Of a stretch of 64,000 bases of DNA, positions 43,924-60,321 are shown piece by piece. Source of the stretch: Chlorokybus atmophyticus (taxonomy: Eukaryota; Plantae; Mesostigma and Chlorokybus algae); the NCBI GenBank assembly GCA_009103225.1, contig RHPI01000671.1, positions 127,531 through 191,530 on the forward strand, written 5' to 3'. The notes under the pieces are model-generated. The model searched no databases. It was not told where the DNA came from and saw only the letters and a list, made by a program, of their open reading frames with translations. Both the position numbers and the translations under genes were made by a program. Each line of letters opens with the position of its first letter. Position 1 is the first letter of the stretch.

Positions 43924-46206
43924 ATGGCCCTGCACGATGGTTACGGCAGCATGCCGTCTGGAGCGGTGAGTAGCATACACGGGTGTTGTGTTTGAACTAT
44001 GCTTTTAGGCTTCACCTGCCAGCTCAGGTCGTTGCCATTACGTTGCCCGGATGCTCTCTGCTTGTGGCTATTTACACAGCGTGCTTGCAGTCCTTTTGCC
44101 TCGTCTTGTCACACACTCAATTCCATCACATAAACCAACCGCACACAAGAAGTCAGCTACCTGCCACAATGTTGCTTGCACTTGGTGTTCACGCGTGCAT
44201 GGTTGCTCTGCGACATGCAACAAGCACGTCGTAGACGTGGTTGAGGCGTCAGCAACTTGTTTTGTATGCGTCAGTCGCTGTAGCTTGCGAGCATGTTCAG
44301 CTATTTTATTGATTTCCCAACGTTGCCACTGTACTGCACCTCACCAGTTATTTTGCTTTGCTGCAGCTGGCACTCGTCCATGAAGAACCCAAAAACATGA
44401 CGAGTGTCACCTGGAAGGACGGAAACGAATATGTATTGGTTTGTCCCACGCCTTACGACATAAGCACAGAGAACAAAGAGCATTGCCCTTTCATCCTACC
44501 TGATGGTCAGGTCTGCAATGCTGGGCCGTTCTGGCCAAGTCAGCTCAACTTTCATGCAAGGCGAGTTTTCTCGCTTCTTCCCGATTTCACAGTTACAATA
44601 GGTTGCATGCAAGCAAAAGCTGCTATTAGTTATGTAGCAACTGATCATGGTGTGCAATTGCAGAGCACACGCACCCGCTGGTGAAAGAAATGAGTTTGCT
44701 CTCACCAAGAAGATGCCGTCAATCTATCTCTGCCCGGAAGAGACTTGCAAGCACCACAAGCTGGAGGGTGCCTTCAAGGAGGCGAGGTCGCTTCGCAACC
44801 ACTACCAGCAGCACCATGTCCCCGCAGATCAGCATCAGTACACCTGCGAAGAGTGCCAGAAGGTGTTTAGCACCCCTAGCCACTTGCGCAAGCACATGAA
44901 GGTCCATGCAGAAGGCCAGTACGTCTGCATGTGTGGAGCCAAGTGCAAGTCGAAGTCGCGGTTGCAGAGTCATGTTGCTTCTCAGTCCAAGTATGGAGGC
45001 ACGCATGGCTTTGGTAAGGCTTCGCTGATGTGTTCCGCTTGGCTTTATTGTTGTCGCATTCCTTGGCCTACAGTCACTTATACTACTAGTCACACATGCT
45101 GTAATAGTCACTATCATTGGGATTATCTCATACCTTCTCTCACAGGTTACGCCATCATTGACGGTGTAGTGACATGGAAAGATGGACTCAAGTACCTCCT
45201 GGTGAAGCCGTCAACCATTGAGGTGGACATGGTGCAAAAGGAACTCTGCCAGTTTGTCCTGCCAGATGGCCAGGTCTGTGGAGCAGGTCCATTCTGGCCA
45301 AGCCAGCTGGGCTTCCACATGAGGTACATACTAGTATCTTCTCATGGCTGTTTGTCAACTTTGGATTGTGTCTGTTAGGCATTGGCTGACAGCTACTTGC
45401 AGGGCGCATACTTCTGGCATGAGTGACCACCAGAAAAGGGCTGAAGACAGCTCCAAGAAGCTGCCGGCTCTTTTTATATGCCCGGACGACAATTGCAAGC
45501 ACAGCAGAATAGACTCCGCTTTCAAGCAGGCGCGGTCGTTGAAAAACCACTTCCACCAGCACCATGTTCCTATCGAGCAGCATTCGTATGTTTGTGAAGA
45601 TTGCCATAAAGCTTTCAGCACAGCCAGCCATCTCAAGAAGCATCAGAAGATACATGGAGAGGGGCAGTATGTCTGTGTCTGCGGAGCCAAGTGCAAGTCA
45701 AAGTCGCGACTGGAAAAGCACATATCCTCGCAAACCAAGTATGGAGGCCAGCATGCCTTCGGTAAGTTGAAGTTGATTATGCCAGAACCTCTTGGCATAT
45801 CAGTCTGGATGACTGTGCTTTGCATTGGGAATGCAGGTACTCGTGGTTTGCATAGACGGTACTGTCATTCTGACATGAATTTGCTCATGTTGCAGCTAGT
45901 GTCCCTGAGTCAGCAAGGGCGGCCACCAAGCGCAAGGCAGACCAGCCGCCCGATGACGAGCCCAGCAGCACGATGGCCAACACCAGCGTGATGCATGGGT
46001 ACGGGCAAGACCCGCACATGCTGCACGCTGGCATGATGCTGCCACCCGCCATGCAGATGCAGCCGGGCATGCACATGATGCCGCATGGCATGATCATGCA
46101 CCAGCCCTTGTCGGCCGGCATGATGATGCCATCCATGGGAGCGTTGCCACCCCACTTGCAGCATATGCAAGCAGCTAGCATGCATGGCCATCAGCAGACG
46201 GCTTGA
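43924..46206 (+). CDS. C2H2 zinc-finger transcription factor with a tandemly duplicated IDD/WIP/STOP1-like four-finger module and a Met/Pro/His-rich tail
   Basis: Exon 1 MALHDGYGSMPSGA, then two copies of [WKDG..C-x9-C..GPFWPSQLxFH|xRAH...CPEETCKHH...HYQQHH...CEECQKVF...HMKVH...YVCMCGAKCKSKSRLQSH...H] with the same intron position and phase; TGA 46204-46206. Confidence 0.88.
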
Positions 46207-47422: not shown

Positions 47423-49177
47423 CTACGCTCTATGCCTGGCTAGGATAAACAGGTTCCCCTTGTTGTCTCGTCCTATCCGATGATCGTCATCAACATACCT
47501 GCATCGCAGCGTTCAGCCATGCCAACAACATAACACCTGCATAACTGCAGCACTCTACACCAGATGCCAACATCCGAGTAAACACCACACGAGTAAGAAA
47601 ACATTGACCAACTCACGTTATATCAAGCCACCCTTCGGGATTGAAGATGGAGAGCAGCAGGTCGTAATTCTTCTCGAATAATGAACGCAGCTGCAAGCAC
47701 AATGACGGGGTTAACCATGAATCACTGCACAGTAGTCACTGTGCAACAGAAGTACATATCAGAGAGCACCACACGTTGGTGAAAAACAACCGTGCTCAGC
47801 ATGCATATGTGCTGTATGCATTCACAAAGCACTGCAATCAAGTCACCATCTCTGGCTCCAGCGTTGCTTGCTCAAAGGTAATGTCAACTCTCTGCAGACA
47901 ATGCACACAAAGGTGTTAATGATAAGCCATGCAAGCATACCAGTGCATTGTAACATAAAGATGGCAGATATAGCTTACGGTTGGTGATGTCACTTGGTAT
48001 CGCGCTACAATGGCCAGTTCGCCCTTGATAAGACCCAAACCAGCCAGAAGGAACTCCACTGTGTTGTTTGCTAAACACTGAAAGCGGGCACATGCAAGAC
48101 TTAGTTGTATGTGTGTGCCGACTAGCGCGCACGCGCATGCACAAACACAACACGCACATGTGCGTGCGTGCGTGCATGCGTGCGTGCGTAAGCATGTGCA
48201 CCACCACACACAAGCATGAACGGTGAGTATGCTCAACCATGTAGCAGATACACGCACCAAGACAACAAACATGCAGCAATTTCCATGCGCGCACGTACCT
48301 GCTCTGTGTCTATGCTTTGGAACAGGTTGCCCAGCGTGATGAACCCTCTGAGGCCGAGCTTCGTGCGTCGCGAGCCTTGGATTGATATGGTCGTGTAAAG
48401 CAGCTGCCAGTCGCCCGCCACCTGAACGGTCCATAGTGAAGCGTCTGCGCTCATAGTATCAATCCAATGTGGCAAAACCCAACATGCTTCCATGGTGTGC
48501 ACTTGAGTCATTGAGCGCGCTGTCGTACCAAGCGAAGGTTTTCTGTTGGGTTGGGAACAGGGTTAAGTGCTTCCAAGGCTTTGGCCAGAGCATCGATCTC
48601 TGCACGCTTAGCTGATGTCACGCTGAATATGCCCCTGTCAGTGCCTGCAACACACGCATAGGCTTGACTGTGACACAGCCTCTTTGCAATTGAGTCTGCT
48701 TGCATTGCTTGAAGTGCTCTTCTCTATCCTCTCAATCCAAAATGTAGTGTGGTGGCTTATACACAAACACACGCGCATGTATACACAAAAGAAGACAAGT
48801 GGACAAACATAACATCAGCAGTGTATAGTATACTTGTCTCACACCTGAGTCTCACCTTCGATTGCGGCAAAGAGGGCGTCCTTGGCTGCAGCAATGGCGG
48901 GGGCATTGTCAGACACGATGGACGCCGAGGCCGAGGACAAGGCGGAGGTGGAGGCGGTGGAGGACGGGGATGAAGCGGAGGAGGAAGACGTGCCTGAGGA
49001 ACCCCGTACGCATTTAGCAACATCATGCCGCCGCAGTCGCTGCCGCCTGTAATGCTGTTGAACCACCGGCGCAGGGCGGCGGAGCTTGCTGCGAATGCTT
49101 CCAGGCTCCACCGACGACACCGACAATGCCGACAACGACTGCAATGCTCCGGTTGCCGCCGCCGCCGCCCCCGCCAT
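47423..49177 (-). CDS. FBN5: Fibrillin 5 (PAP/fibrillin family plastid-lipid-associated protein)
   Basis: Transit peptide, then [11 protein letters not shown]|[19 protein letters not shown]...NPVPNPT|[31 protein letters not shown]...|[25 protein letters not shown]|[19 protein letters not shown]; the GSxRTKLGLR and IFNPEG motifs are diagnostic of the FBN5 clade. Confidence 0.88.
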
Positions 49178-49325
49178 GCCGGCCTCCTTGTCAACCAACC
49201 TCACCGCCTCAGGCGGGTGTAGCGTGCCGTAGTTGCTGCTACTGTGCTGCTGGAGGCGGCGCAGTGGGAGGAGAAGGAGGAGGCGGCGGCGAAGGCGTGG
49301 CTGGGTGGCTTGGGTAGCTGCGGGC

Positions 49326-50277
49326 ATGGTGAAGCTGCAGTTAGAGTTCAGGTGAGTACAATTGTGCGAGTGCAGCAGAGTTAACACACACGCGAGCATG
49401 CGTGTGTGTTAACTCTGCTTTGATCTTCAACTGCAGCGGTGGGCTGGAGCTGCTGTTCGGCAACAAGAAGGCGGTGTCGGCGGATGTGCCGCCTAGCCAG
49501 CAGCAAGACGACGCTAACGGCAACGGGAACGACCACACCGACCAGGCAAACGGCGTGAAGGTCTGAGAACAGCTGTAGTTTCTGAAACATAACCACCTGC
49601 ACAAATGTGTCGCTGCTTGTCCTGAATAGCCTTCTCTCGCTCTGCATGTCACCAGTACGTGCTTGTGGATAATCAGGTTGGCAGGGTTGGTGCAACCTGC
49701 TATGTTGAAGTGCATGGGCACAGCTTGCTTTCCTGCGCATGATATGTGAGATTTGGCAATTGCATAGAAGCTCGAACCACGCATGCATGCATGATCTCTT
49801 GGTCACTCTGTGTATATCCTTTCTGCACACTGTGACCTTTGCAGCAGCAAGCAGAGAAGTAAGCAAGCTAGCACTACTCTTGTACTGGCGTTGCAGACAA
49901 CATGCCTATCACACAGTTGTGTGCTTGTGTGGCTGCAGTAACATGCAACCCGCATTGCACTATATGCTTGCAGGCGAGCGTTCGCGTTGGGGACTTATTG
50001 CTGTGGATGCGTGACAACCTGCTGCAAGAGAGGCCTGAGCTCTTCATCAAAGGAGACACTGTGTGAGTACTGACTGCTCATGCAACATGAGCACAACACG
50101 TGATGTACGGCGCTTGTTGTGTTGCAAGCAATGCTTAATGCCGCGCTCTTCTTATGCAGACGACCCGGGATTCTGGTGTTGGTCAACGACTGCGATTGGG
50201 AGCTGACAGGCAGGCTTGACAGCCGCGCTTGCGAAGGGGACTCCGTGGTTTTCATCTCGACATTGCACGGCGGTTGA
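49326..50277 (+). CDS. URM1: Ubiquitin-related modifier 1
   Basis: MVKLQLEFS|[11 protein letters not shown]...[23 protein letters not shown]|[17 protein letters not shown]...[10 protein letters not shown]. Confidence 0.96.
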
Positions 50278-51544
50278 GGTCATCATCATCATCGCTACAT
50301 TGGATCGCATGCACGAGGCACATCAGAAGGCACACTGTTGGCCGGCGGAGACTGTCAGCACAAACGCAATGCACTCAAGTTTCTTCTTGTCATCGACTGT
50401 GTCCCAGATAGAGGTATATATGTACTCAGTGTGCCGACACTGCTTGGCATTAGGGGTGCTAACTGACTATTACTGGCATGCAGGGTATGCTTGCTGTAGA
50501 AATAGCTGATGGCAGAGAGTGACTAAGAAAACTGGTTTAAGGCTGAGTTTTACTCTTGAATTGGGCATTTGGGTTAGGTACCAGTGGGTAAGCTGCACCA
50601 TACTTGTTGCACATGAGTGTACTCAGTCCTCCTATCTTTGGTACTTGGGCCACTGAGTATTAGGGTGATGCGCATATCCGCAACATGCCTTCAAACAGGA
50701 AGTAATGCATTGCCCTTCAGAGGCTTGATAAGCTGGTGCGTAATGCACTGACAACACTTGATGGCATCTGATATTCACGCACACACAGGTGAGTGACTGC
50801 CTTGGCGGTGCTGCAAGAACTTCTGCAGTGGTCGTAGTGGTTGTGGGCCTCCACTGTCGCTGCTCGCTTTGTGCACTAGCCTATGACTCCTGGCTGGGGA
50901 GTCTTGCTGCGGCTTGGCTATCTTTGTTATCATATCCCCTGCCTATTTTGGATGATGCAGGAAGGGACCGATCGTTGAGGATGAATCAGTGAGTGAAAGT
51001 GGCTACAACTTGCCCCTACACTACAGCTCAGCCGTCATGTACTGATGCCGTTGGCGTGTATGTGCATGTCTGCTTGCGTCCTGCACAGCGGCCTTTCATG
51101 CATTGAACTTGCCTATGCATGCAATACTGGAAGTCCGTTGGATAACAACACGGCAAATCTTATTACGCATACAACACCTCTTGAAATACTTGTCTTATAT
51201 TCACTATGTACATACTTTGATACTTGGTCAACCTATCCTCTTGTCTGAACGGACACATGGTTGCCGCCCAAGCGGCAACCGTCTGGTGCGTGTGCTTGGT
51301 TGACGGGTGGTCAACTTTAGTAACTACAGTGTGCAGCTGGCATCAATCGCCGCGATGGCGCCTGTCCTGCAAACATACCTCCATGGACCCGGTCCCATGG
51401 GGCATGTTGCGCAGCCTTCTGGAGCGCTTTCTGTATAGATATATGGCCAGCCTATGGCAGCCTACTTGAAACCATCCTGGACTCAACGGTGAAAGGAACT
51501 GGATTCCAAACTCGCTGCACGCAGTAGAAGCTGTGCGTGCATTA

Positions 51545-54500
51545 TCAATCTGGCAGGTACGATGTGAACATGCCATTGTTGGACTCCGACGGGAACGCTT
51601 GGGACATCTGGAACTCCCACATTGGCGCTGCGGCCATCATGCCTTGGCGGCAGTTGCCGTTGAAGTTGTGTGGGTACTGCATGGCGCCACCGCCGGGCAT
51701 GGGTCCCGCGACGTACTGCATGTTGGTGTAGTATGGGGCGCCCATGGGGGGGCCTTGCTGCGAGCCGTCATGCGGCGGGGCGCCCATGATGAAAGGCACC
51801 TGCATGATGGGCTGCATCTGCTGTTGGCGGCTGCCTTTGGTGTTAACTCGTGTGCGTCTGCTGTTGGTCTGCTGCGGACGCACCCAACGCTGCCGCTCCT
51901 GGCGAGACTCTTGGCGAGACACTGGACCCTGGACCAGCGGGAGCTCCTCCGCATCATCGAGCGCCACATTGGCGTTGGCGGGGTTGGTTGCACCTGTGAC
52001 AGGAGACATGTCACCGCCTTCACTGCGGTCCGAATGCGGGCTCTGGACCACTGGAGGTGAGTTCACGGGTGGGGACACTTGACGCGGCTGCATTGGAGGA
52101 GTCTGCGGTGTCTTCGGCTTTGCTTCGGCTTTGGGAGGCTCCGCAACTGCTTCGACCTTGCTTGAAGCGGGTGCTTCGCGTACGGGATCCCCAAACATGG
52201 AATCGTCGTCCGACCAGTCGCTCGCGGTGACGTCGGAGACGGGTCCGTCGACGGACTGAAGGCTGGGAGCTGCGCGATTCAGCGCTTCCGCAAATGCAGC
52301 ACGTAGCGCGCCAGTTATGCTTTTTGCGTCGCCAGTTGACTCGCATTCGGTGGTGGTGCGCAGCTGCTTGAGCACCTTATACCTAGCAGAGACATCTCGC
52401 TCGATGTAATAGATTGCATACCTGGCACAAGGCAGTGATTGTGAGTTCGAGTAATTACCAACAAAGAATGCAGCGCCTTCTGCGTTGCTTGAGACTTACC
52501 CGCCAGAAAGTGTGTCCGCTGCAATTCTGTACTTCGTTTCAATGCGCACGATGTTGCCATTCTTGCACATGCGACGGAACCGATAAAAACCGGTCATGCG
52601 GTCGTAATTGACGGTGCGACCCAATAGCAGCGCATCCAGTACGGGGCCTGTCATGTGTGTCCTGCAAAATGCAATTGTCAGGACAGCATGACAAACTGCG
52701 CTTGCCACAAAACGTTTGTATGCACAACTGCACACATAAGCACGCATATGACATCATCTGTGCACCTGATCTGTTCCAGGAGAAAGGCAAGCTTGGGGCG
52801 ATCTTCTGGGTGGACAGAGTCCACATACTGCAACCACATGACAAAAGATCAAGCTACCCTTCCAACTTCCAACTTGAATCAGAAGTTGTTATGCACGTCC
52901 TCTTACCGAGTGCCCTACAAGTTCGTCGGGTTTGATCCCAAGCACGTCGTTGCAGGCAGCAGATACCCTTGTGATCATCCCCTTTGAGTCTGTCTGAAGC
53001 AAAACATCTGGTGACACATCTTCAAAAAGCTTTGCCCGCGACCTCTCTTCCTCCATAGCCTTGCGCTCTGATACCGTCAACCAAACAGTCAATCATCCCA
53101 GCCATATACATATGTACATATGTAACAGGCGAGTCTTTCCGCGTGCAACAAAGTCATGTTGATAACGAATTGCTGGTCGCTTACCAGTGATGTCGCGTTC
53201 TACCACGACATGGCTGATCCTGCCCTTGGTCGTGTCATACTCCATGATCTGAGCACGGCCTTCGACCCAACACCAGCCGCCGTTCTTCTTCTTTTTGCGG
53301 TACTCAATGGTTGTTGTTGACAGCTTCTCTGGGCCCTGTGCAGTAGACATGCTCAGCTACAATTAACACAGCATAAAGTCCTGCATGAAGAGAAGAGCAA
53401 CTGCAGACAGAGATGCACGCCGTACCTGAGCAACGATCTCAGCGCATCTCCGTTTGGTGGCCTCAGCATCTTCTTCAATGATCATGTCATAGCCATTCTT
53501 GCCAATCTGTCAAACATCAAGCGTGAGCCCAGGTCTGCAATGCAGCGTTTGCAACACAACATATCCTCAACAACAAAACACCAATGGCAGCCAGCGGGTA
53601 CCAGTTCACTTGGTTTGTACCCCAAAACCCTCTCAACCGCACTGTTGACCGAAGCCACTGTGCCGTCATGGTTGAAAGCAATCAGGATGTCACCCGCAAT
53701 GCCCGAAATCAACTTGTTAATCTCAGCACCTGCAATGTCACATAAGGGGTGAGATGTAAACACCACAGCACTGCTCCACCCACAAGTGAGGATCAGTTTG
53801 CGCACCGCTGGCGAGAGCCCTCAACTCCGTGCAGTCCTTCTCAACGCTGAGGTACAGCACTTGGTCACTCAGCAACGAAACGCACTCCCGAATCTGTGCT
53901 TCTACCCACATCTCTGATCCATCAGCCTTGATCTGCGCCACCCAAGAAGTTCAGCAAATTGCACAAGGCTCATGCATACACTAGAGTTGGCAGGGCAAGC
54001 TTTGGTATTGTCAGTCCTGCTTACTCGGCAGAATGTGCGGGTGTCTTTGACAGTAGACCCCACCAAGCTGCTCAAGTAGACGCGATCCTCAGGAGCTACC
54101 GTGTCATAAACATGCTGCCCGACCTGCAAGCGCAGTAATCCACAAGCCCGCCATCAGCAAATCTTTAAATGCAAATGGCAAATGCATTTGCACTTGGCAC
54201 GCAGGAGGAAAGCTGCTGCCAACTATACTCATAACAGGCACAGGGACTTACCAGTTGGTCCGCCGGGACACCCAAAGCAGATGCTGAAATGTCGCTGACC
54301 ATGTGAATGCGACCTTTGACGTCATACAAGAAGCCACCAACAGAGGCCGCCTGTACGGTTGCACTCAGCTGCTGTACTGTCTCGCGCAGGTACTGTTCCC
54401 AGGTGCTGTCCTCCTCAAGTATGTAGAGAGAGCCTTCAGCGCGCACTGCTCGGGCGTTAATGAACTTGTACGTGCCATCTGAAGCCAAACGTCTATACTG

Positions 54501-56898
54501 CATCTGCAGGATTGGAGATGTTGACTTGGTGTCGGTGACCAATGTCGGTTTTGCAATTGACGGCTGCAACATCTCAGGCAACAGCGTCATGGACTCGCTC
54601 ATAACGTCTGGGAATCATCACAGACTTGTTAGTACAGACTGTTTACTAGCTCACTCAGACAAAGCCAAGCAGATACCCTGTCTGAGCATCCTGCCCCGCA
54701 AGAAGCGACACACAGCAGGTATCACAAGCACATTTCCTCTGCATGCCTGATGTGGGGACAAGAGTTTCCGCGGCACCGCGCCAGCTGTCAGCAGTAAGCA
54801 ACATCTTGATGCGCCACTGATCGCCTTCGACCATGCGCTCGTAGATGGATGCGCCTTCAACCATTCCGGGGCCAGGTCTGGAAGCACTGACTATGAGCCC
54901 CGTTTTGCAGTCCAGCTCGCACAAGTTATACTTGCCAGAATGCAAAAGCAGCTGCAGCTGCTTAGCCCTGCAATCTGCAATGGCAATCAGCATGCAGTCA
55001 GTCCATGAGGATATCGGGCAATTGGGGCGCTAGCACACCTTCGAATTGGCGGGAGGCGGCATCGGTTTGACAGGAAGCATCCGCAATGCCAGCTTCTTGG
55101 CACTTTGACTCATGCGGTTGGCTGAGTTCTGCAGTTCAGCACATGTTACGTCCCTCGAGTACAGGTGCGAACCAACCAGCAAGGCTGCATACCTTGTTTC
55201 GTTTGACAGGCAATACTGGAGCTTACTTCGACAATCAACACTGCAACAAATAAGCATCAGGCCAACTGTGTCAAGGCCTCATGCAAGCGTGTTCACCGAG
55301 TTGCAAACCTTCAGTCTGAGCAGATGCATCGACAAGTACTGGGGCTCTTGTGTCTGACACCTCTCCTTGTTGAACACTGCTGCCCTGCTTTTCAGACTCT
55401 GCCTTCTTCTTCTTCTTCTTGCGTAGAGAGTCTTTGACGCTAAGTGTGGATTTGCCATCAACTCCGTCCTGCATCACACAGCCAAGTTAGAGAAGCTGCC
55501 TCGAGCTGTGCCATAACGGGTAGTGTGGGTGCCGACCTGATCAGGTGACTGCAGAGCTATTGCGTCCTTCAATACACGTTTCACTTCTGGGTTCCAAGCA
55601 ACCTGTGCAACATTCCTGCCATTGCACTCTATTGGTGCGCCTGCCCTCAATAACATGCGAACGGCCTCCACATGACCTGAAAACAGAAGTCGCTGTGAGT
55701 CTAAGTGCATGCGCTGCAGTACTTACCTAGAGGCACCAGCACAAGTTTCAAGCATGAGCGTTGCTTGCCTTCTCCAACAGCGTAATCCAGAGGACGCAAG
55801 TCCAAACCATCCACAACATCCATTATCTCCGGATCGTGCGCAAGCAGTGCCTCACAAGCAGCTGCTTCACCGTTTTTTGCTGCAAGAGTCAAGGCATGTG
55901 CACCTTGGTTGTCCACTGCCAGAATGTCTGCTCCCTTTTTCAACAGGAGCTTTATGACGGACACATTGCCAGCCTGCCAGACAACAGAAGCAGTTGCACC
56001 ACTGTCGTGCGCAATGCCCAGTAAAGGCGGTGGTGACCAACTACACGCTGAAAGTGCGTTGCTAACACTTTGCATCTATTCTATGTGCCAGTGTCATTGT
56101 GCGGTCAGCAAGAATCAAACCCCTACCTCCGCAGCTAGAAGCAGACTGCATTTGCCATCTTTATCTCCCATGTGAGGATCAGCCCCAAGACCCAGCAAAC
56201 ATGCAACCATCTTCCCTTCCGGATCCGACTGCGACGCCAGCATGAGAGGTGTCCGCTGAGACGGGCCAACTGGCTGCTCCAGGGTTGCACCCAATCCCAT
56301 CAGGGTGTGGACCTGCAAGCATGTCCAGGTAAGCTAAGGCAACATTGCATTGCTACCCAGCAGCAGCTGTAGTGGTAGTAGTAGTAGTACATTCCTGGGC
56401 AATATCCCTCTGGTCTGCCGGCATGAGTAACAACGTTGAGATGGCTGCTGCCTACCATGTTCATGTCGCCGAGTTCAGCGGCAAGAGCTAGGGCTGTTGG
56501 CGAGTTGGGGGTTCTTGTGCTGTTTACAAGTTCAGCAGTGCGTCCACCGAGGGACTGGGCAGTCCACTTGTCACCTGCTAACACGGCCAGTCTGAAGAAG
56601 CCGGCACCATCAATGGGCATGTCCCTCTGACGGTCGATCTGCGCGCGGAGTGCGTAAATGTCAAGTCACAAATGTCTGCATGCTTAACAACACGTGGGTG
56701 TACATGTTTAGCATTGAGGAAGCTCACCTCTTGAAGCAGCAGTGCTAGTAACGACTCGTCACGCGATGAGAGGCGCTGCGACAAGTTCACGAGTGCTTGG
56801 GCAGTAACGCGGTTGAGCTCGTCTGCGTCCCGGCTTCGCACAACCTTGCTTGATTTGGCCAATGTGTTGCTGCGCGCAACGTCACTAACCCTGCCCAT
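51545..56898 (-). CDS. Ankyrin-repeat + four PAS/PAC domain protein with a low-complexity tail and no recognisable catalytic output domain
   Basis: ANK repeats (PTALALAAELGDMNMVHTLMGLGA; TPLMLASQ; AGNVSVIKLLLKKGADILAVDNQGAHALTLAAKNG; RPLDYAVGEGHVEAVRMLLRAGA) splice in phase to PAS/PAC units (VGQHVYDTVAPEDR; VNSAVERVLGYKPSELIGKN...WCWVEGR...ERDITERK; VSAACNDVLGIKPDELVGHSYVDSVHPEDR...ERDVS). The 3' end could extend by further splicing. Confidence 0.8.
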
Positions 56899-58399
56899 AG
56901 ACCGCAAGTGTTACATGACAATGTATACCAAGCCAGTACTCCTGGAAGCGCCCACAATGTACCAGTACCATTCCACAAAGCAGATTTATGCAACAGTCGG
57001 AGTGTGAGCGTCTGTGCTACTGCTACAGCATACCAACAATGCAATGGCCACAGCAGCCTGTCAATGCTCAAGCTGCCACAAGCGAGTGCGCAATGAAAAC
57101 TGGGAAGCACGCCACACAACGCTGTAAATTGTGAAAGTGAGCGAAACGAGCTGTGAGAAATCACAATCAAGCAGCTCAGCACATCCTGCACCTGCTGTGA
57201 CCGGCTGCATGGCAAACGCAAGGGCAGCCAGTTGCATTGCAGGCGAGAGGCGCCATGACGGGTTCCCCTAACCCTAGACGCCCGGTTGGCCACCAATCAG
57301 CAGCTAAGCTGCCAGTGCTGCCACTTAGCCAGCAATGCACAGCCAGGATAGCGGCCAATGCAAGGCGCCCACCACACCGCCACGCTGGTGATCATCACCC
57401 TCCTCCCCGTCCCCCACGTTCCTCCCTCCCTCCCCGCCTCCCCCACCCTCAAGCCAGCCACTCCGCCTCCACCACCCTGCGCCACATCCACGTGGCGGCG
57501 GCCGCGGCGGCGACGGATGGTAAGGACCAGGCCGCGGGCAACTGCACTGTCCTAACCTTGGCAGGTGCGCTGCGGGCCAATAATAAAGCAGTGTCACACC
57601 CTAACGTTAACAGCTGCTGCCTGTGAGGGGACTTAGAGCCCTCATGTCAAGGTCATCATGATGTCATGTGCACCATGATGTGGTGCTAGCAGGCAAGGGG
57701 AGCCGCCCAGATTGAAGCCAGGACTGACTTTAGAAGACAGTCATCCGTCTCGAGTCGTAGCTTCCGACGGCGGTTGACAAATCGCTTTCCATGCATTGCA
57801 TTGAAGACGATGTAAGTGTTGGGCCTTGTCTGACACAACCGCTTGTGGCAACGTGCGTGTTATCAGAAACGTGTTGCAGCTATCAAGTGTACCCCCCTCT
57901 ACCCCCCGCCGAACGGGGGCATGTATTCATCTACCATAATAATAGGTGACAGGCTGCAACGCATGTATGGGGCTCCAAGCAGCTTTGTTGTTTTTCGTTT
58001 TCTCCCATACTGCCGGGCATCGCGAGGGATGCCTCAAGCATTCATCCCTCACATTAGAGCATTGTCGCACGATAACATCGTCCGATATTGGCTAAACCCT
58101 ATCAAATGCAAGGTGCTCGACCTCAAGGTTTAAAAAAAACATATGTGTTATGTCAACGGGTAAGGCTTAGCCTACAGATGGTATACTAGCTCAAAGCTTA
58201 ACGTTCACATCGATGTGGCCCGTACCCTTCAACAGACGAGTCTGCAAAGCAAAGCTAAAGTTTGGTTGGTCAGGTTACGAAGTAGTACAGATTCAATTAA
58301 GTTAAGGCTCAGCCTTATACATCGAACCATGCTTAGAGCTGTACCGAAGTATGAGACCCATAGGCTGTGGCAGCATGACATGGGCGCTCCAGAACAGCA

Positions 58400-59900
58400 T
58401 TAGCCATGTACAATGCAACCATATATTATGCCAAAGGTGCCTGAAGCTATGATGACATGTTGGGATAAGTTGTATGTGTTACAATATCAATTGCATGTTA
58501 TATAAATTGTGTCACTGTTACAACAACCATTTACAAGCTAGTTAAGTTAACAGCACACGTCATTAGTTATGCAACAATATACAACAACTGAAGACCAGGC
58601 CTACAGCTGAACAGTGCTCAACTGTAGTTAAACACTGTTCAACTGTAGGTGTGACACCATGTAGCAGCAGCAGCACATGCTTGTGACAACCTCATACAAA
58701 CATGTAATCAGAAGAAGGCTTGACATTGTATGAGCAGCATTGCATAGCAAGAGTAACAGCAACAGTAATACATGCAAGGCTTGAGACTGCCTGAGTCACA
58801 ACTCACATATGTGTATATACACAAAAACTAACTGCCAGTTAGTTTAGCATTTGCATTAGTATAGCGACAACAGTGTTGTCGCTAACACACCTGTGCTAAT
58901 GCACAATGATGCAGCAGCGAGATATCATAACAAACCATTTACACATGGCATTTGTTAACATGTGTTGACACAATCAGGGTGTGAAAGGCAGCATTAATGC
59001 ATACTATCAATGATTAGTAATCATTAAAAAACACAATATTACTTACACAGCCTGGTTTAATACAACTTGAATGTATGACATACACGGATGGTGATTAGCC
59101 TAATGCTGTGCACAATTCCAAGCAACTTGCCTTATGGAAGGAAGACGTGTGGAGCCTGGTAGGCACATGTCGTGTCGTCCCTATTTATGATTCCAGTGCT
59201 TATCAGCGCAATCTGTTACAACTATCGCTGATATGTAATAACATTAAGTAGTTGGTCTGCATGACGTGCCAAGCGCAGTGGTTAAATTGGCGTGCGCAAT
59301 ACAGAGGGGACATCACGCAGCAGTGTTGGTGACCTCAAGATGACTTCATAATCACAATAAAGTGGCTAAAATTTTCGCCGCCCTGCTTTTGCCTATACAA
59401 TTATGTCTTCATTCTACAAGTGTAAAACGGCGCCTTCACCACTAGGCTATAACAGTAATGTTTGCTGCCATATGAGGAGCCACATGTCTCATGTATCATT
59501 TACCAATATGAAGCATGATGCTTTTTGTATCTGTTACAACAAGCTGCAAATTTCTCGTAAGCATTACATTATGTCAAGGCTGCATCTGCAACGCATTAAT
59601 TGTGTTGTTATTAATTTGCGTATTATGTTGGTAATTAGCAACGCATTCACTTGTGCAAGTATACCTTGCAGAATTCATTCATTCATGGTTTTACAATAAG
59701 TACCTCGTGCACAAAACAATATGTATTTTGTAAAGCTACTTATGCTCACATTCTATGAGTTGTATAAACTTGTGAACGATTGTTGCATATTTAATAAAAC
59801 AGCATTAAAAAGTCGAACATGTTGATATAAGGCATTTAATGTTATTTTTAGTGTTTACATATTGTTGTGGGGCAACGGTGACCATATGCATGGGTTGAAG
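58400..59900. other. AT-rich, CpG-poor decayed island
   Basis: TG/CA-rich, few CG, no credible ORF; contains a SINE-like head; boundaries approximate. Confidence 0.5.
59405..59490 (-). repeat. Degenerate tRNA-derived (SINE-like) repeat head, copy 2
   Basis: Minus strand TAGCCTAGTGGTGAAGGCGCCGTTTTACAC; shares flanks with 33600-33690. Confidence 0.55.
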
Positions 59901-60321
59901 ATGGTGAGCTCAGCTGACCGAAAATAGGACCCCAACTCCTTCCCCTCCTTTTCTTGAACACCCGGCACTCCCTTCAGAGGCAGTAAAACCCAACATTTGA
60001 GTGCAGCCTAGGGCGATTGCGTACCCATGTAATAATCCAATTGTTGCTAATGATCATGAGCAGACCTCGCCCGACAATCGCCCACATCACTTTGGGCATA
60101 CATATAAATCATTTGCCATTATCGTCCTGGCCGCGACGGCCGTTGATATCGCCATCGAATAATGACAACTTGCCGTTTAGCACTACACATGGAAAAGTCA
60201 GCGCGATCATTGGTGGTCACAACCGTTATGACCGCCAATTTATAGCTCAGGACCACATTCATGGCCATGCGTCTTCAGTATGGCATGAACGACACAAGAC
60301 CATATATGGTCCACCGTCATG

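Follow-up and report, generated by a model that had tools for sequence, protein, structure and literature searches.

An intact, expressed gene of Chlorokybus atmophyticus joining ankyrin repeats to a PAS array with no recognised output domain

A minus-strand gene of 20 exons in the streptophyte alga Chlorokybus atmophyticus (CDS 57256..51545 of the 64,000-nucleotide stretch of DNA analysed here, the window) encodes a product of 1,223 residues, composed of an N-terminus of 84 residues, six ankyrin repeats, a linker with six consecutive lysines, a PAS array and a tail of about 270 residues. The gene is intact, expressed and nuclear, and its ankyrin-PAS architecture is so far found in one species, with no detectable relatives of the same architecture. 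Three PAS units (PAS2, PAS3 and PAS4) lay above curated cut-offs, in addition to one divergent candidate (PAS1), and neither Pfam nor NCBIfam revealed an enzymatic or DNA-binding domain. On balance, we favour a role as a non-catalytic interaction adaptor gated by its PAS array, which may act in the nucleus.

Contigs of spliced transcripts, taken from two independent studies (X1, 2021, and X2, 2013), defined the gene structure; they report the presence of the transcript and not its level. The complete coding region (51545..57256, minus strand) comprised 1,223 codons and a stop, with joints taken from the contigs of both studies and an open frame kept across 20 exons and 3.7 kb. The contigs covered each of the 20 exons, aligned to the window with 0 mismatches and skipped 18 introns within 51545-56898, of which 16 had GT..AG ends and two GC..AG ends on the minus strand. 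One extra intron (56895-57195) connected to the first coding exon (57196-57256), and the coding sequence begins at 57256, upstream of position 56898 at which the gene had been started when read from the sequence alone. The first transcribed exon (57196..57362, minus strand), to which the 167-nt unaligned end of the X1 contig mapped, contained the first ATG at 57256, with genomic in-frame stops upstream of it near 57395. At the other end, the start of the 3'UTR (51400..51544, minus strand) was continuous with the stop codon in X1 and X2, and the contigs extended about 257 nt more. An in-phase micro-exon of 48 nt (55193..55240, minus strand; joints 55128/55193 and 55240/55309 in X1 and X2) had been skipped by the direct joint 55309/55128 of the sequence-only reading, which left the frame unaffected because the exon is in phase. 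An Rfam search of positions 50000-58500 gave no match, and the window yielded no second copy when searched with the protein by tblastn.

A single X1 contig of 4,180 nt ran from the 5' exon through about 400 nt beyond the stop codon (51545-51547), so the ankyrin and PAS halves, proposed earlier to be in phase, do belong to a single mRNA, to which splicing adds no catalytic exon downstream. Neither transcripts separating the two halves nor a catalytic domain added by downstream splicing was observed, the one mRNA ending with the stop codon and 3'UTR. That a neighbouring ankyrin gene and a PAS gene were merely joined by read-through or chimeric assembly is very improbable: the linker (residues 301-413) is domain-free and encoded by small exons, and the X2 coverage of the gene consists of two contigs rather than one, but the X1 contig covers everything, the 3,342-nt X2 contig crosses the ankyrin-to-PAS linker with joints identical to those of X1, the linker exons are all in phase without a stop, and the reference annotation independently describes one gene.

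This annotation, Chrsp21S03327 (Chlat1; database protein P0001), shared the start and stop of the transcript model and differed from it at two splice sites. The reference model mis-splices the two GC-AG introns, and the transcripts correct both. At the first (55677..55768, minus strand), P0001 replaces the GC donor by a GT lying 42 nt beyond it, adding 14 residues that would break ankyrin repeat 6, and at the second (54608..54746, minus strand) by a GT lying 15 nt beyond it, adding 5 residues. The protein searches used P0001 as query, which carries these 14 and 5 inserted residues relative to the transcript-derived protein.

The N-terminal 84 residues (56615..57256, minus strand) had a Cys-rich start (C6, C11, C13 and C15) and a Ser/Arg/Ala-rich composition, with no recognisable domain and no significant Pfam match. 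They were followed by the six ankyrin repeats (55579..56614, minus strand; residues 85-300 including the C-terminal capping helix), counted by eye over residues 85-289, in agreement with an initial estimate of about six. The tandem 33-residue repeats exceeded the Pfam gathering thresholds for both Ank_2 (PF12796; E 1.2e-26, 93.5 bits for a cut-off of 27.3) and Ank (PF00023; 63.7 bits for a cut-off of 21.1) over P0001:95-335. When Pfam was run exon by exon, the ankyrin and PAS matches were weak or fragmentary only. The linker (55040..55578, minus strand) was Ser/Lys/Gln/Ala-rich, with no domain according to Pfam (no significant match) or PDB sequences (no match), and contained an RKKKKKK run (55403..55423, minus strand; residues 330-336) that was read from the sequence as a candidate monopartite nuclear localisation signal (NLS).

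Across the PAS array, the NCBIfam model TIGR00229 (sensory_box) scored 125.7 bits over 3 stretches. PAS2 (53725..54389, minus strand; residues 563-685) matched PF00989 with 26.5 bits for a cut-off of 22.6 and was related to PAS3 and PAS4 with E values of 2e-6 and 6e-9, respectively. PAS3 (53045..53724, minus strand; residues 686-811) matched PAS_3 (PF08447) with 54.2 bits for a cut-off of 25.6, enclosed a second lysine run (residues 767-770) and ended with the ERDITERK motif, while PAS4 (52361..53044, minus strand; residues 812-952) matched PAS_3 with 37.7 bits for the same cut-off, and possessed the VHPEDR motif and an insertion preceding the G strand. Of the four units initially proposed, these three thus stood, while the first (PAS1; 54390..55039, minus strand; residues 414-562), PAS-like but divergent and enlarged by an insert of some 35-50 residues, had no Pfam match and was not significantly related to a profile of 60 PAS units with hhalign, despite a correct register (probability 1%, P 0.048). 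The linker and PAS1 also had no match among PDB sequences, even at E 10. An AF2 model of PAS1 showed PAS topology (pLDDT 73) and had Foldseek matches to LOV, FixL and HIF-2a PAS-B, the alignment from which the model was built being itself one of PAS domains, and the language-model (Atlas feature) similarity of the unit to PAS_3 clusters was 0.95-0.97. PAS1 is kept as a divergent candidate on the basis of this PAS-alignment-built model and the language-model similarity. An AF2 model of the whole PAS region made without an alignment (pLDDT 33) was discarded.

All the motifs quoted in the sequence-only reading were present, namely LG..P.EL.G (three times), VHPEDR, G...WVE, ERDITERK and KKKKKK (residues 331-336). 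In LOV photoreceptors (phototropin, ZTL, PLP, aureochrome), the flavin-adduct cysteine lies in a G.NCRFLQ-type motif, and heme-PAS gas sensors such as FixL and DosP ligate heme by a proximal histidine on the F helix. The whole Chlorokybus protein lacked NCRFL, as already pointed out, and also G.NC.F, and no ligand-binding signature was recognised in the PAS array.

Among solved structures, those nearest to PAS3 and PAS4 were the interaction and ligand PAS-B domains of ARNT, HIF and AhR, together with the sensor PAS of DosP. The best solved relatives of PAS3 were the PAS domain of a Leptospira DGC and ARNT/HIF PAS-B, and PAS4 matched ARNT PAS-B, while DosP and FixL gave weak matches only, among solved structures as well as below threshold in NCBIfam over PAS3-PAS4. 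In a pure scaffold, the PAS units would serve as dimerisation or interaction modules only, in a constitutive ankyrin/PAS scaffold or a condensate component. Many eukaryotic PAS domains (PER, ARNT PAS-A and PAS-B) serve mainly for interaction, and the best solved relatives belong to that type; moreover, no cofactor motif was found and the Gln/Pro/Met/Gly-rich tail fits multivalent assembly. However, the units are of the S-box PAS_3 type (TIGR00229), the full proteins closest to them are bacterial sensor kinases, the sub-threshold NCBIfam matches over PAS3-PAS4 include the sensors DosP and FixL, and a four-unit array is typical of sensory inputs. We regard such a scaffold as unlikely, though as the most serious competitor of the gated adaptor.

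The C-terminal tail (51548..52360, minus strand; residues 953-1223) was acidic and Ala/Ser/Asp-rich, then Pro/Val/Gln-rich and finally Pro/Gly/Gln/Met-rich, a composition that agrees with the succession described earlier and from which the tail is presumed to be disordered. It belonged to no Pfam family. The composition of the linker and tail agrees with an NLS together with an activation or low-complexity region.

The reported lack of a kinase, cyclase, phosphodiesterase or DNA-binding domain was confirmed with Pfam and NCBIfam, which also detected no F-box. Besides ankyrin and PAS, no Pfam family reached E 0.01, HisKA and HATPase_c being absent at that threshold and, on the tail, also at E 1. 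In NCBIfam, TIGR00229 alone passed its curated cut-off; the other matches were sub-threshold and over PAS or ankyrin parts, with kinase models matching over PAS parts only and far below their cut-offs. Several familiar classes were rejected on these grounds: a LOV photoreceptor (no cysteine motif), a two-component histidine kinase (neither HisKA nor HATPase_c), a PAS-Ser/Thr kinase of the Raf-like B-group MAPKKK or PAS-AMPK-like type (no Pkinase match, and an mRNA in which the tail is followed by a stop and 3'UTR), and a bHLH-PAS factor (no HLH match, an N-terminus made of ankyrin repeats, and similarity at the PAS-B level only).

Word searches with P0001 residues 100-975, 300-985 and 428-705 found no ankyrin-PAS relative, orthologue or fragment, and among the 69 matches of one of them the query alone possessed both Pfam sets. 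An exhaustive search with a 118-residue exon returned the protein itself and 9 weak multi-PAS matches, nothing more; the four of these that were scanned (P0002, P0003, P0005 and P0008) had histidine-kinase domains at the end. Atlas feature searches gave generic PAS clusters only, with no ankyrin-PAS combination, and a metagenome scan detected no relative of the protein. A phrase search of the literature revealed no described ankyrin-PAS family, so the protein and literature searches leave intact the suggestion that the architecture was undescribed. The nearest PAS relatives were bacterial multi-PAS kinases with about 25% identity (range about 22-33%), and the best relative, P0013, had a bacterial gene neighbourhood. 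In a tree of PAS units, the algal units were on long branches, clustering neither together nor with one donor, and neither gene transfer nor internal duplication is claimed.

A gene that arose from a multi-PAS histidine kinase or a PAS-Ser/Thr kinase by loss of the output domain, and that now drifts with little function, would account for some of these results: the nearest relatives of the PAS array all end in HisKA/HATPase or GGDEF, PAS1 is strongly degenerate, the algal units are on long branches and no orthologue was detected. Against such decay, the reading frame is unbroken across 20 exons and 3.7 kb, both studies, eight years apart, show correct splicing of the transcript, the ankyrin repeats are well formed, and no kinase remnant was found in the tail, the 3'UTR or long downstream open reading frames. 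A decayed relic is improbable, more so than the scaffold.

For the favoured PAS-gated adaptor, the PAS array would be the input, binding a small ligand or cofactor or changing its pairing state. This change would travel along the helical PAS-PAS linkers and alter the choice of partners by the ankyrin groove and the acidic and Gln-rich tail, the output being protein-protein interaction in trans, as in PLP or in the partners of animal PER and bHLH-PAS proteins, rather than catalysis. The earlier suggestion that a sensing adaptor might report through its ankyrin surface is an inference, and the precedent of PLP supports effector-less PAS proteins acting in trans. The most likely setting is that of a nuclear co-regulator, favoured by the KKKKKK run and the acidic, then Gln/Pro/Met-rich tail, by analogy with the ankyrin co-factors NPR1 and IkB, which dock on DNA-bound factors. 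Alternatively, the Ser/Arg/Ala-rich N-terminus could act as a targeting peptide, the lysine run being the one pointer to a nuclear localisation.

More speculatively, and with a low probability, the protein might be a ligand-gated transcription co-regulator, founding a streptophyte-algal class in which a bacterial-type PAS array controls ankyrin docking and a Gln-rich activation tail. The array would then sense a metabolite, redox state or a gas. If true, NPR1/IkB-type co-factors would have in this protein their PAS counterpart, and animal bHLH-PAS signalling a plant-lineage analogue that lacks a DNA-binding domain.

Ankyrin repeats and PAS domains are both highly promiscuous, often-shuffled modules, and the protein is a new shuffle of these two very common modules. 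Within the lineage leading to land plants, Chlorokybus lies on the earliest-diverging branch, and reconstructions of ancestral sensing draw on its signalling inventory. The practical value of the finding is modest pending a ligand or a partner.

Compared with known systems, the protein shares with bacterial multi-PAS (S-box, PAS_3) sensor histidine kinases and GGDEF/EAL proteins the LG..P.EL.G, PED and RDITERK motifs and helix-linked tandem PAS units, whereas these possess HisKA/HATPase_c, receiver, GGDEF or EAL outputs and no ankyrin repeats. This PAS array of bacterial S-box type, connected to an ankyrin module in place of a kinase, represents a further eukaryotic re-use of two-component-style sensors. 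The PAS-B domains of animal bHLH-PAS proteins (ARNT, HIF-alpha, AhR, CLOCK/BMAL1 and NPAS) and PER were the best solved matches (E 1.6e-9 to 1e-5), and, as in many of these proteins, an acidic and Gln-rich region follows the PAS units with no enzymatic output. Unlike bHLH-PAS proteins, however, the Chlorokybus protein has no bHLH, begins with ankyrin repeats and possesses three clear units and one candidate instead of PAS-A and PAS-B, and the sequence similarity, at the level of the PAS_3 family only, does not indicate orthology. The ankyrin repeats of NPR1/BOP in plants, and of IkB and Notch in animals, are non-catalytic interaction surfaces, coupled in NPR1 to ligand sensing, but none of these proteins has PAS domains and NPR1 possesses BTB and SA-binding domains. 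The comparison is one of analogy, the generic ankyrin repeat being the only sequence resemblance seen.

Within the green lineage, PLP (also LLP; Arabidopsis At2g02710 and tomato PLP) contains no effector domain and exerts its action in trans, by binding GDP-L-galactose phosphorylase (PMC4496561, PMC10291033). The premise that green-lineage PAS proteins are always coupled to an enzyme or an F-box fails because PLP has neither. The Chlorokybus protein likewise combines PAS-type domains with the lack of an effector, but PLP consists of two units, including a flavin-binding LOV, and has neither ankyrin repeats nor a long low-complexity tail, whereas the algal protein has no LOV cysteine motif and no detected sequence relationship to PLP beyond the PAS fold. 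It adds a second kind, beside PLP, to the effector-less PAS proteins of the green lineage.

The minus-strand ORF fragments between 51545 and 57256 encoded ankyrin (ANK)- and PAS-like peptides with short gaps in between, as expected of an intron-bearing eukaryotic gene. Of the words sampled from 51400-57200, 56% were present in two public transcript runs from separate studies (X1, 2021; X2, 2013), the level that a spliced transcript would give. Aligned with the window, contigs from these runs showed no mismatches and skipped 64-153 nt at a time, each skip being bounded by CT..AC on the plus strand, i.e. GT..AG on the minus strand, with two exceptions (GC..AG introns at 54608-54746 and 55677-55768, minus strand). 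A single X1 contig (4,180 nt) spanned the entire gene, from about 257 nt 3' beyond 51400 up to 56894, its 167-nt loose end mapping to 57196-57362, while an X2 contig of 3,342 nt traversed the ANK-to-PAS linker with joints identical to those of X1. The architecture is real and expressed, and it is very unlikely that the two halves were brought together in a chimeric transcript.

Once the exons were joined, the mRNA frame was open for 1,258 codons counted from the contig 5' end, with its first ATG at 57256; shortly upstream of the contig the genome has in-frame stops. The stop codon (51547-51545) was followed by a 3'UTR in both X1 and X2, and the CDS comprised 20 exons encoding 1,223 residues. 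A sequence-only reading had placed the gene at 51545-56898, with the correct stop but missing the first coding exon; its joint at 55039/54975 was confirmed by the transcript gene model, whereas that at 55309/55128 omitted a real 48-nt in-phase exon (55193-55240) present in the transcript contigs.

With the largest internal exon (118 residues) as query, exhaustive HMMER searching returned one strong match, the 1,242-residue protein P0001 (jgi/Chlat1/3090/Chrsp21S03327; EukProt EP00898 Chlorokybus atmophyticus), with 100% identity across the exon. P0001 was the same as the transcript-derived protein but for 14 additional residues after position 267 and five after 489, which coincided with the two GC-AG introns (55677-55768 and 54608-54746, respectively), where the annotation took nearby GT donors. 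The transcript form is preferred as the model, since the 14 additional residues would split ankyrin repeat 6. P0001 served as the reference sequence for searches.

Domain-family profiles assigned residues 85-300 to ankyrin repeats (Ank_2, E 1.2e-26; Ank, 1e-17; six repeats counted by eye) and identified three certain PAS units, namely PAS2 (residues 563-685; PF00989, 26.5 bits for a cut-off of 22.6), PAS3 (686-811; PAS_3, 54.2 bits) and PAS4 (812-952; PAS_3, 37.7 bits). The full-length protein also matched TIGR00229 sensory_box over three stretches (125.7 bits), and PAS2, PAS3 and PAS4 were mutually related (E 2e-6 to 2e-11, 26-29% identity). The same profile searches detected no kinase, HisKA/HATPase, cyclase, GGDEF/EAL, F-box, bHLH or other DNA-binding domain, and no significant family in the N-terminal 100 residues, the linker or the 273-residue tail. 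The LOV cysteine motif was absent from the protein sequence. The tail was acidic at its onset (Asp 12%, net charge -6), then Pro/Val/Gln-rich, and Pro/Gly/Gln/Met-rich at its end (about 12% each), and a KKKKKK run occupied residues 331-336. The earlier description of an ANK-PAS protein with no enzymatic or DNA-binding domain, no LOV motif, an acidic then Pro/Gln/Met-rich tail and a lysine stretch was correct, but only three of its four PAS units were certain.

The first unit, PAS1 (residues 414-562), had no Pfam match and is a candidate divergent PAS unit. A profile of 60 PAS units gave a P of only 0.048, yet the register was right, the QYRRLASDGTYKF segment falling on the E.R...DG strand, and its language-model features adjoined PAS_3 clusters at 0.95-0.97. 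With a PAS-unit alignment as input, AF2 predicted a PAS fold (mean pLDDT 73, sheet 88-96) comprising an N-cap helix, A/B strands, an insert of 34 residues with low confidence, an F helix, G/H/I strands and a linker helix. Foldseek matches to this model were LOV, FixL and the PAS-B domain of HIF-2a (E 2e-4; TM 0.5-0.69 by target). The test was partly circular because the alignment was made of PAS domains.

Two other local features were observed. A second lysine run (RKKKKNGG; about 53270-53285, minus strand; residues 767-770) lay inside PAS3 at the turn preceding the WCWVEG strand, where such a run is unusual in the 60-unit PAS alignment. Residues 1-20 (57197-57256, minus strand) contained a four-cysteine cluster (C6, C11, C13, C15) and, after it, a stretch rich in Ser, Arg and Ala; this N-terminus could be an acylation site, a metal site or a targeting peptide.

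Around the gene, the long same-strand ORFs downstream (47884-49866) yielded no catalytic family, and an RNA family search of 50000-58500 found none. Two overlapping-frame ORFs at 44647-45991 (plus strand) encoded C2H2 zinc fingers, with the BIRD/IDD second-finger model among the matches (E 1e-7 to 2e-5), and are probably one zinc-finger gene with intron(s). Just upstream of the gene, G+C fell from about 0.53-0.60 to 0.37-0.44 at 58000-60000, a stretch that could represent a mobile element or another repeat.

Among 69 matches to P0001 residues 100-975 in a word search, the query alone possessed both Ank and PAS families; the others either had ANK alone or were bacterial kinases and cyclases with multiple PAS units. 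Word searches with residues 300-985 and 428-705 gave bacterial PAS kinases or no match, and the top PAS-array match (P0013) sat in a bacterial gene neighbourhood. An unlikely rival to an adaptor role would be that the protein is a relic of a PAS-kinase whose output was lost. The three algal units lay on long branches of a 60-unit PAS tree and did not group together, which argues against a recent internal duplication of PAS2-4. The single-exon HMMER search found no orthologue, and no further copy was found in Atlas clusters, a metagenome scan or the window itself. The absence of the architecture elsewhere is provisional, as the word index was limited in length and words, only one exon was searched exhaustively, and other streptophyte algal proteomes were possibly missing.

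From this anatomy we infer a scheme in which the PAS array would provide the input by binding a ligand or cofactor or by a change in pairing, although the sequence points to no particular cofactor, and the ankyrin groove and acidic/Gln-rich tail would provide the outputs by partner binding. Given the lysine run, the nucleus would be the likeliest location. A constitutive scaffold with no sensing is a less likely rival to this input-output scheme.

The nearest solved structures by sequence were the PAS-B domains of HIF-1a, ARNT/ARNT2, HIF-3a, AhR/Spineless, CLOCK/BMAL1 and PER, followed by the PAS domain of a Leptospira diguanylate cyclase and by the heme sensor DosP, a likeness that, judged from sequence, is at family level only (PAS_3). 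Literature searches returned no match to the ANK-PAS phrase and, when broadened, no description of the architecture. The ANK-PAS protein represents a new pairing of two common modules, so far in one alga only. The premise that green-lineage PAS domains are always coupled to an enzyme or F-box was wrong, since no effector domain is predicted for the plant PAS/LOV protein PLP (PMC4496561), which acts by direct binding, inhibiting GDP-L-galactose phosphorylase in a way that depends on blue light (PMC10291033).
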